Source: Rebecca billardiae RCC1528
Lineage: Eukaryota > Protista > Haptophyta
Length of the DNA: 64,000 nucleotides
NCBI GenBank assembly: GCA_965240325.2
Contig: OZ251231.1
Coordinates: 620,001-684,000, forward strand
Reading direction: 5' to 3'
The notes below the pieces were generated by a model. The model was not told the DNA's origin. It ran no database searches and worked only from the letters and a program-made list of their open reading frames with translations. The position numbers and the translations under genes were made by a program. Below, in pieces: positions 20,162 to 21,862 of the stretch (its first letter is position 1; the number at the start of each line of letters is the position of its first letter).

Positions 20162-21862
20162 GTCTAGCCGTCCTCGTGAACGCCGACGCCAACTGCTGGC
20201 CGAAGGTGGGCACGCCGCCTGGCATGTCGATGCCGAGGCGGCTGCGTGTGTTCCTACTCAGTGGGATTTACGTGTCCTCATGCCTTGGCGAGCGGCAGCA
20301 GATGCGGTGGGCATGCCGCTCGCCGTCGACGAGACGCGGTGCGCGGGCGCGCGAGATGGCTGCAGCCGGGCTCGTGGCCCTGCGTCGCCGGCGGCGGCGG
20401 CTCGCACGCGGGTGGCGCGTCGCGTGCACCGACCAACATCTTTCGGCAACTCAGCGGTAAGCAACGCTCCGCATCGCGCCCCCTCGCGCTTCGGGCCACC
20501 GCCTCTTCTCTCTCTGCGTGCGTGCGCACTTTGTCTCTTCCGCACCCCCGATCGCCACCGTTCCCTCTTCGCCACATGCCTCCTCCTCCGTGGGTGCGCC
20601 CCCACGCGGATCGCTGCTCCATCTCTCCCGCCCTGCCTCGGGATCGCCCCGGTGCCAACGCCAGCCGGCTCCTACACAAGGACCGCTGGCGGCACACCGC
20701 GCGCCGGGCCCCGTGCGCACCCGCGGGCCATTCACAGCATCCGCAAAGGCCGTCTAGCCTTCTCCTGCTTCCGCAGCGCCGCGCCCGCTGGGCGGGCTGC
20801 CTGCTATCTCTCCTCTTCGGGTTCCATCTCACTCGCACTGCCCCACCTGCCCAGCCCCCGCTGGCCGGCCCTCGTGCGTGCGCGACTCACACGTGCCTTG
20901 CCCCTTTCCTTCCCATCACTCAATGGGATTTCTCCTCCACGCGGTGCTCCCCAACACACCATGAAACGGGATCACTCACGCACCGCGTCTCGTCGACGGC
21001 GAGCGGCATGCCCACCGCATCTGCTGCCGCTCGCCAAGGCATGAGGACACGTAAATCCCACTGAGTAGGAACACACGCAGCCGCCTCGGCATCGACATGC
21101 CAGGCGGCGTGCCCACCTTCGGCCAGCAGTTGGCGTCGGCGTTCACGAGGACGGCTAGACGTGGGGTTATTGGTACAATAACTGATTGTCTAAGAGGACG
21201 ACAAGAACGCCGGGCGCCAGCGCCGCTCATCAGCCACATCGCCCTCTACCAGACCATCGCCTCAAAGCGCTGCTCCCGGACAAACAGTCTGTCCGGGTTT
21301 GTCGCCGCGGAGATCTGCTGTTTCCGGCGCCCCCTGGCTGCTTCGCCAGGCGCGGGCGCGCGAGATGGCTGCAGCCGGGCTCGTGGCCCTGCGTCGCCGG
21401 CGGCGGCGGCTCGCACGCGGGTGGCGCGTCGCGTGCACCGACCAACATCTTTCGGCAACCCGCCCACCCAGGGCCCGTTGGTCTGGTGCTCGGGCGGCGG
21501 GACCACAACACCCGCCGTCCGACCGCCCGGTCCTGCGGCGCTGCACTTAGGGCTCATGTGACCCTTGCCGAAAGATGTTGGTCGGTGCACGCGACGCGCC
21601 ACCCGCGTGCGAGCCGCCGCCGCCGGCGACGCAGGGCCACGAGCCCGGCTGCAGCCATCTCGCGCGCCCGCGCCTGGCGAAGCAGCCAGGGGGCGCCGGA
21701 AACAGCAGATCTCCGCGGCGACAAACCCGGACAGACTGTTTGTCCGGGAGCAGCGCTTTGAGGCGATGGTCTGGTAGAGGGCGATGTGGCTGATGAGCGG
21801 CGCTGGCGCCCGGCGTTCTTGTCGTCCTCTTAGACAATCAGTTATTGTACCAATAACCCCAC
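20162..21862. mobile_element. Non-autonomous DIRS-like element (ITRs plus internal complementary region) inserted in (TA)n
   Basis: 20341-20449 is the reverse complement of 21565-21673 (ITR core). 20979-21160 is the reverse complement of the left end 20162-20343. 21161-21458 is the reverse complement of the right end 21565-21862. No credible ORF. Confidence 0.7.

Follow-up and report, generated by a model that had tools for sequence, protein, structure and literature searches.

The DIRS1-like element at positions 20162-21862 of the window, by which we mean the whole 64,000-nt stretch of Rebecca billardiae RCC1528 DNA analysed here, is probably one aberrant copy of an abundant non-coding split-repeat family rather than the representative of a DIRS1-type lineage; what had been taken for its internal complementary region (ICR) is the ordinary internal X'/Y' (B1/A2) junction of that family. 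Tyrosine-recombinase retrotransposons come with two terminal layouts, inverted terminal repeats (ITR) plus an ICR, and split direct repeats, which are thought to serve one purpose. To our knowledge, the replication of split-repeat elements has never been dissected, and we know of no described route from one terminal layout to the other. The initial annotation had seen in the element a young non-coding relative of the tyrosine-recombinase retroelements, a view that our analysis supports, and had called it DIRS1-type. In that second claim the ITR plus ICR layout stands, but the assignment to a DIRS1-type element or lineage does not, since the canonical form of the family consists of split direct repeats and the layout of the window copy is found once in the genome.

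Self-comparison of the element (20162-21862) bore out the coordinates first given for its ITRs, core and internal block, all repeats of that layout being present at 100% identity or complementarity. Three inverted matches were recovered: a 182-nt arm at 20162-20343 is complementary to 20979-21160, the core at 20341-20449 to 21565-21673 (109 nt), and the 298 nt at 21565-21862 to 21161-21458. The longest inverted match as aligned (303 nt) reaches 99% only, the shortfall being 5 nt that run into the flank. The core also recurs in direct orientation at 21350-21458, in a direct match of 110 nt starting from 20341-20450 (100%), and perfect repeats of this length (100-300 nt) far exceed what chance would produce. 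Equally confirmed is the end-to-start junction at 21160/21161, where the plus strand reads GGCTAGAC followed directly by GTGGGG and the minus strand AACCCCAC followed by GTCTAGCC, that is, the last base of the element joined to its first; this X'/Y' junction is the presumed recombinase site.

In the module coordinates of the canonical copy described below, the structure of the window copy is X'inv(194..13)-Y'(190-299)-U-X'-Y'-S(1-105)-Y'inv(298..1), with modules 99.6-100% identical to those of the split-direct-repeat family. The left terminus (20162-20343, minus strand), X' 194..13 inverted, corresponds to the segment A of the initial annotation plus 3 nt and starts with GTCTAGCC, the reverse complement of the family 3' end GGCTAGAC. 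It overlaps by 3 nt (gcg) with Y' 190-299 (20341-20450, plus strand), which is the core C of the left ITR and carries an ATG remnant at Y'205. On the plus strand there follow the unique non-coding body U (516 nt, 20451-20966, 99.6% identical to the canonical copy), a complete X' of 194 nt (20967-21160) ending in GGCTAGAC and a complete Y' of 299 nt (21161-21459) starting with GTGGGGTTATTGG, these two being the halves of the supposed ICR, and positions 1-105 of the 229-nt spacer S (21460-21564), earlier regarded as a unique 106-nt loop, the remainder of S being absent. The right terminus (21565-21862, minus strand), Y' 298..1 inverted, is the reverse complement of C plus segment B and ends in AACCCCAC; a conserved 5' hairpin lies at 21165-21183 in the complete Y' and, inverted, at 21840-21858 in this terminus. 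The outer ends are those of a canonical minus-oriented copy and the whole core is plus-oriented: read on the minus strand, Y'(1-298) is followed by the antisense of the segment from Y'190 to S105 and by X'(13-194). Two novel junctions delimit the flipped core, X'13/Y'190 (A/C), with 3 nt shared between the joined ends, and S105/Y'298, with no shared nucleotide. The unusual length of the ICR, remarked on in the initial annotation, follows from the flip of the core, and nothing suggests an adaptation.

The element splits a TA run, as had been observed from the outset. The left flank (20035-20161), which is target sequence, holds (TA)63 at 20035-20160; in the right flank (21863-21975) a single A at 21863 precedes (TA)28 at 21864-21919, then (TG)n and mixed TA/TG. 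No target-site duplication (TSD) can be distinguished in these TA flanks, and the absence of RT and recombinase sequences also held, as the element contains no supported ORF and only the frames expected in 60-68% GC DNA. Three more long TA runs in the window (33, 49 and 34 repeats; 27865-28032 and 30406-30473) carry no insertion.

A homology search with the element in its own genome (72 Mb, 41 contigs) yielded 324 matches, nearly all of them only over element positions 180-1403. The earlier-defined segments were mapped on 30 loci and then on one canonical copy of 1731 bp, which is organized as Y'(299)-U(516)-X'(194)-Y'(299)-S(229)-X'(194), i.e. A1-body-B1A2-spacer-B2, the two Y' (299 nt) and the two X' (194 nt) each being 100% identical. 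These are split direct repeats, a layout seen in more than 15 full copies and from which the window copy itself departs. Relative to the window copy, two subfamilies were recognized, one ~100% and the other ~95% identical. All full copies begin with GTGGGGTTATTGG (GTGGGG...) and end with GGCTAGAC (...CTAGAC), with no discernible TSD, and TA runs abut both ends in 15 of the 17 copies inspected. In exact whole-genome scans the internal junction, GGCTAGAC joined to GTGGGGTTATTGG, occurs 70 times and the 13-mer of the 5' end 280 times; 163 of the 210 non-junction 5' ends (78%) directly follow TATAT, these counts describing a small group of related families, as the 13-mer is common to at least one further family. 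TA microsatellites are the real target of the family, so the targeting first suspected from a single element was right at the family level. The sense orientation of this non-coding family was assigned by likeness to a candidate helper element, discussed below.

Tandem arrays of X'Y'U and X'Y'S units were also observed at loci L013 and L020/L027 and in the genome-wide scan for the internal junction, where junction spacings of ~1009-1017 and 722-727 bp occur; such arrays should arise if circles are inserted at the internal X'/Y' of resident copies as well. Moreover, pieces of the family at 99-100% identity, some of them ending in TA runs, are present in contigs of three differently coded organisms or samples (X1, X2 and X3), and the family therefore extends beyond the assembled strain.

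Counting copies, as had been proposed at first, gave a divided result: the family is abundant (70 junctions, 324 matches), but the flipped A/C arrangement is single. In fact, exact scans of the 72-Mb genome found one copy of the X'13/Y'190 junction, also with a pattern that allows for the 95% subfamily, and there is no sign that the ITR plus ICR layout has been amplified. The second junction type, S joined to inverted Y', was found by such scans only in the window copy and at position 496745 of contig C34. The C34 copy, flanked by TA on both sides, reads Y'(196-299)-U-X'-Y'-S(1-139)-Y'inv(291..1); the topology of its right half is that of the window copy, its breakpoints Y'196, S139 and Y'291 differ by 6, 34 and 7 nt, and an inverted X' is missing. 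Deletion cannot turn either copy into the other, so the two are independent events.

Further aberrant copies were collected by exact whole-genome pattern scans and from the inspected loci. Solo Y'-X' insertions of ~480 bp occupy TA runs at 18 loci; their junctions, 17 of them distinct in sequence, join Y'288-299 to X'1-14, one exceptional locus keeping 17 nt of U; examples are L031 (4968-5451), L032 (4680-5166) and L033 (5253-5731), with others among L031-L036, and the solo of L033 is cut at X'13, the same nucleotide as in the window copy. These solos arise repeatedly and not by the copying of a solo master. At five loci tandem duplications of Y'~180-299 stand at the 5' end (L003 1197-1609, L010 2616-3017, L012 1203-1609, C8:3162062 and C33:878458), each duplication different and joining Y'288-297 to Y'179-189; L013 adds one more, and they look like mis-aimed first strand transfers. 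Two copies begin directly on TA at Y'184 and Y'196, and at L013 a plus copy that breaks off at S102 is joined to a minus copy cut short at X'94. All four breakpoints of the window copy (X'13, Y'190, S105 and Y'298) lie in the hot spots so delineated, Y'190 falling within Y'179-196, and by our own arithmetic the chance of three of them lying in windows of 12-18 nt out of 1731 nt is ~6e-7; the hot spot at S~102-139 comprises three events. The region Y'~180-196 is no repeat boundary and lies 10-25 nt upstream of the ATG remnant at Y'205. The aberrant junctions carry no copied poly(A) and show 0-3 nt of microhomology, from which it follows that they are neither at the recombinase site nor the result of repeat-driven misassembly.

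Since the breakpoints of the window copy coincide with the hot spots of independent aberrant copies, formation during retrotransposition is favoured over rearrangement in place. Judging from the junction positions, we hypothesize that the hot spots are the ends of replication intermediates. Y'~180-196 (~190 in the window copy), ~15 nt upstream of the ATG remnant, would be the probable 5' end of the transcript, and replication would yield an LTR-length piece running from X'~4-13 through the X'/Y' site to Y'~289-299. If the two ends of this piece were joined together and the circle integrated at X'/Y', a solo Y'X' insertion would result. In the case of the window copy, the ends of the LTR-length piece would instead have been joined to both extremities of a cDNA of core length, spanning Y'~190 to S~105, that entered in the opposite orientation, either by template jumping of the reverse transcriptase or by end joining, both of which would give 0-3 nt of microhomology. 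The recombinase would then have integrated the chimeric circle into a TA run via the X'/Y' of the LTR-length piece, which would yield exactly the structure seen in the window copy. On paper, such a circle would hold two recombinase sites in inverted orientation, and its single strand would fold into the dumbbell of the Cappello model, in which DIRS-1 reportedly templates itself via its ICR as a dumbbell-shaped single strand. The DIRS1-like layout of the window copy would be a geometric by-product of this joining.

Several observations count against an origin during retrotransposition: the hot spot at S~102-139 has few events behind it and the junctions lack a copied poly(A), the C34 copy has no inverted X' end and would need an extra step, and tail-to-tail copies with a deletion do exist (L013), deletion between adjacent inverted copies being possible in principle. 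Two other routes were considered. An inversion mediated by the recombinase, acting either on the internal site together with a TA site or on two copies, would on paper give X'/X'inv or separate half elements instead of the junctions seen, and was rejected because the novel junctions are not at the recombinase site. Self-priming by snap-back of the plus strand at the S/Y'inv junction is disfavoured by the lack of microhomology at that junction. By eye, neither a convincing tRNA-type primer-binding site immediately following Y' nor a convincing polypurine tract preceding X' could be made out.

Rearrangement in place would have the element, after ordinary integration, flipped, partly duplicated and partly deleted within one TA microsatellite, starting from a canonical copy or from two to three adjacent copies in opposite orientations, by template switching during replication or by palindrome-driven deletion. 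Copies of the family are indeed clustered within single TA runs in opposite orientations, as at L013, and the window copy can be derived formally from a canonical minus copy by deleting S'106-229, inverting one segment and duplicating Y'190-298. Nevertheless, we regard this account as unlikely: random breakage would leave unexplained the four breakpoints shared with more than 25 independent aberrant copies, one of these, Y'~190, being no repeat boundary; the topology recurs in the C34 copy, whose breakpoints are displaced by 6, 7 and 34 nt; and the canonical element contains no inverted repeats able to drive an inversion. The C34 locus, with its different breakpoints, also speaks against an artefact of assembly, in which a fold-back or chimeric long read would have been fixed in the consensus between two microsatellites. 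The long flanking TA runs are hard to assemble and none of the short Logan contigs spans 20340/41 or 21564/65, so chimeric reads carry a small risk as the source of the layout. An artefact is nonetheless highly unlikely, as the novel junctions, with 0-3 nt of homology, could not be made by a switch between repeat copies and the element lies 640 kb inside its contig between unique flanks.

Two further readings give the layout a function. A genuine, heritable non-autonomous DIRS1-type element, with cDNA ends folding onto the long ICR and an autonomous DIRS1-type partner, would match the published ITR plus ICR definition exactly; the extra C beside the ICR would provide the cDNA 3' end with a 110-nt primer-template duplex, and termini and target are those used by the recombinase of the family. 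Against it, the A/C junction exists in exactly one copy in 72 Mb, all modules are 99.6-100% identical to a split-repeat family with at least 70 junction-bearing copies, and the loci inspected included no ITR/ICR element that encodes RT and recombinase, the recombinase family that was located being split-repeat. An ITR plus ICR architecture was accordingly not encountered as a heritable trait, and we consider such an element very improbable. The window copy might also represent a split-direct-repeat element that its own replication machinery turned naturally, in one step, into a functional ITR plus ICR element, able to retrotranspose by folding its cDNA ends onto the 480-nt junction. In principle, going by its layout on paper, this single copy could work like DIRS-1, and such a conversion, which we hold to be improbable, would reveal how one terminal architecture changes into the other and from what source the DIRS1 layout may have sprung. 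An aberrant joining during retrotransposition of a split-repeat element remains our preferred reading.

The search for a longer, recombinase-encoding partner succeeded in part: a recombinase element with a related 5' end is present in the genome, but no DIRS1-type partner with the same ends was found among the loci inspected. Five weak PF00589 matches led to this split-repeat element, which resides in TA/CA runs, starts with GTGGCGTTATA... and has the internal junction GGAGGACAC joined to GTGGCGTTAT. In the 1317-aa ORF of its longest copy three parts can be recognized: an RT-like FTDD motif, a stretch that resembles RNase H (DAAKDG...GGYAH) and a C-terminal tyrosine-recombinase match, which scores 24.5-25.3 bits against PF00589, below the Pfam cut-off of 27.1. 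No Pfam RT match was obtained with the 1317-aa protein, nor with its N-terminal 881 aa searched separately; likewise, a Pfam search with the upstream ORF of a public contig and a sequence search of the PDB gave no match. Homologues of the protein carry YTDD; RVT_1 is weakly detected in three of eight, and others match PF00145 or PF00589. In an AlphaFold model of the putative RT region (pLDDT 51) the top 50 Foldseek hits are all retroviral RTs, at E values of 0.2-0.7, an outcome that is only suggestive and makes for a weak RT assignment. The genome holds ~10 copies of the candidate helper, five of them found with the recombinase part; the element is seen at L042/L048 (C33:~127,300-132,800, minus strand), L043 (3422-9945) and L044, the shorter copies in L043 and L044 having open frames of 981 and 963 aa.

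The 5' end of the candidate helper, GTGGCGTTAT, is related to that of the non-coding family; between the 3' ends, GGAGGACAC in the helper and GGCTAGAC in the family, there is no more than a resemblance. Four families, whose 3' ends are also similar, have in common a hairpin at nt 5-23 (GTTATnnn-loop-nnnATAAC); it comprises 8 bp and a 3-nt loop, lies 5 nt from the 5' end and is preserved by compensatory changes, the inner 3 bp differing in each family and always pairing. This conserved hairpin is likely to be a recombinase or priming signal. Given the shared hairpin and the related ends of a recombinase-encoding element, the latter is a candidate helper of the non-coding family, the mobilisation of which in trans is plausible but unproven. 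Another non-coding split-repeat family, with the junction GGCTAGAC joined to GTGGCGTTATAGGG and a body of ~4 kb, has the same 3' end as the window family and adjoins or lies inside the recombinase element (L043 3870-5023 and 4548-4560; L042 298-4323, minus strand). At L016 (2872-3660), L028 and L029, X'(1-88/90) is fused to a further family with the junction AACCCCAC joined to GTCTAGCCGTCCTCGAAG, and these fusions may represent a chimeric subfamily that has spread.

Non-autonomous elements of the DIRS order and both terminal layouts are already known. The repeat layout of TOC1 itself, described by Day et al. in 1988, is said to be like the split-repeat layout of the present family. The A1-body-B1A2-spacer-B2 layout has been described for PAT-like/Ngaro elements (PMC8969392, PMC9210276), and TOC1 of Chlamydomonas reinhardtii is cited as a non-autonomous DIRS element (PMC9940879). 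With TOC1, PAT and Ngaro our family shares this organization, the absence of a TSD and the end-to-start internal junction, and it is non-coding like TOC1; it differs from them by its size of only 1.7 kb and its strict (TA)n target, and the window copy, with its flipped core, no longer has the split-direct-repeat layout. For DIRS-1 of Dictyostelium discoideum, in which ITRs are combined with an internal region complementary to both extremities, the ICR has been shown experimentally to be essential for retrotransposition (PMC7192593). The window copy likewise carries ITRs whose outer ends are not identical, together with an internal block that is complementary to each extremity, and on paper its layout satisfies the self-templating scheme of Cappello. 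In contrast to DIRS-1, which is autonomous and multi-copy and has an ICR of 88 nt (33+55), it is a single non-coding copy with a complementary region of ~480 nt, its relatives are all split-repeat and its layout is secondary. The recurrent by-products with fixed ends found here are also reminiscent of the solo LTRs and one-LTR circles known from LTR retroelements and of their aberrant strand-transfer products. By analogy, the LTR-length pieces, the duplications of R-U5-like segments and the imprecise end joints may be equated; unlike in LTR elements, the by-products of this family would be integrated by a site-specific recombinase at X'/Y' and so become new TA insertions. The literature searched contained no report of (TA)n-targeted DIRS-order elements and no documented conversion from split direct repeats to ITR plus ICR, an absence that is weak evidence, the reviews of Poulter and Goodwin lying outside that search.

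Flipped copies such as the one in the window are open to mis-annotation as DIRS1-type elements. The strict (TA)n targeting, by a putative recombinase site with a palindromic centre (AC/GT), is of interest for site-specific integration. The window copy shows that a conversion of layout needs only one aberrant joining event, but the value of these observations lies more in the set of aberrant joints, which is informative on replication, than in the single copy: the more than 25 independent by-products, comprising solo insertions, duplications, truncated copies and two copies with a flipped core, have junctions that cluster at four positions, and these four clusters predict the start of the transcript and the ends of the replication intermediates of the family.
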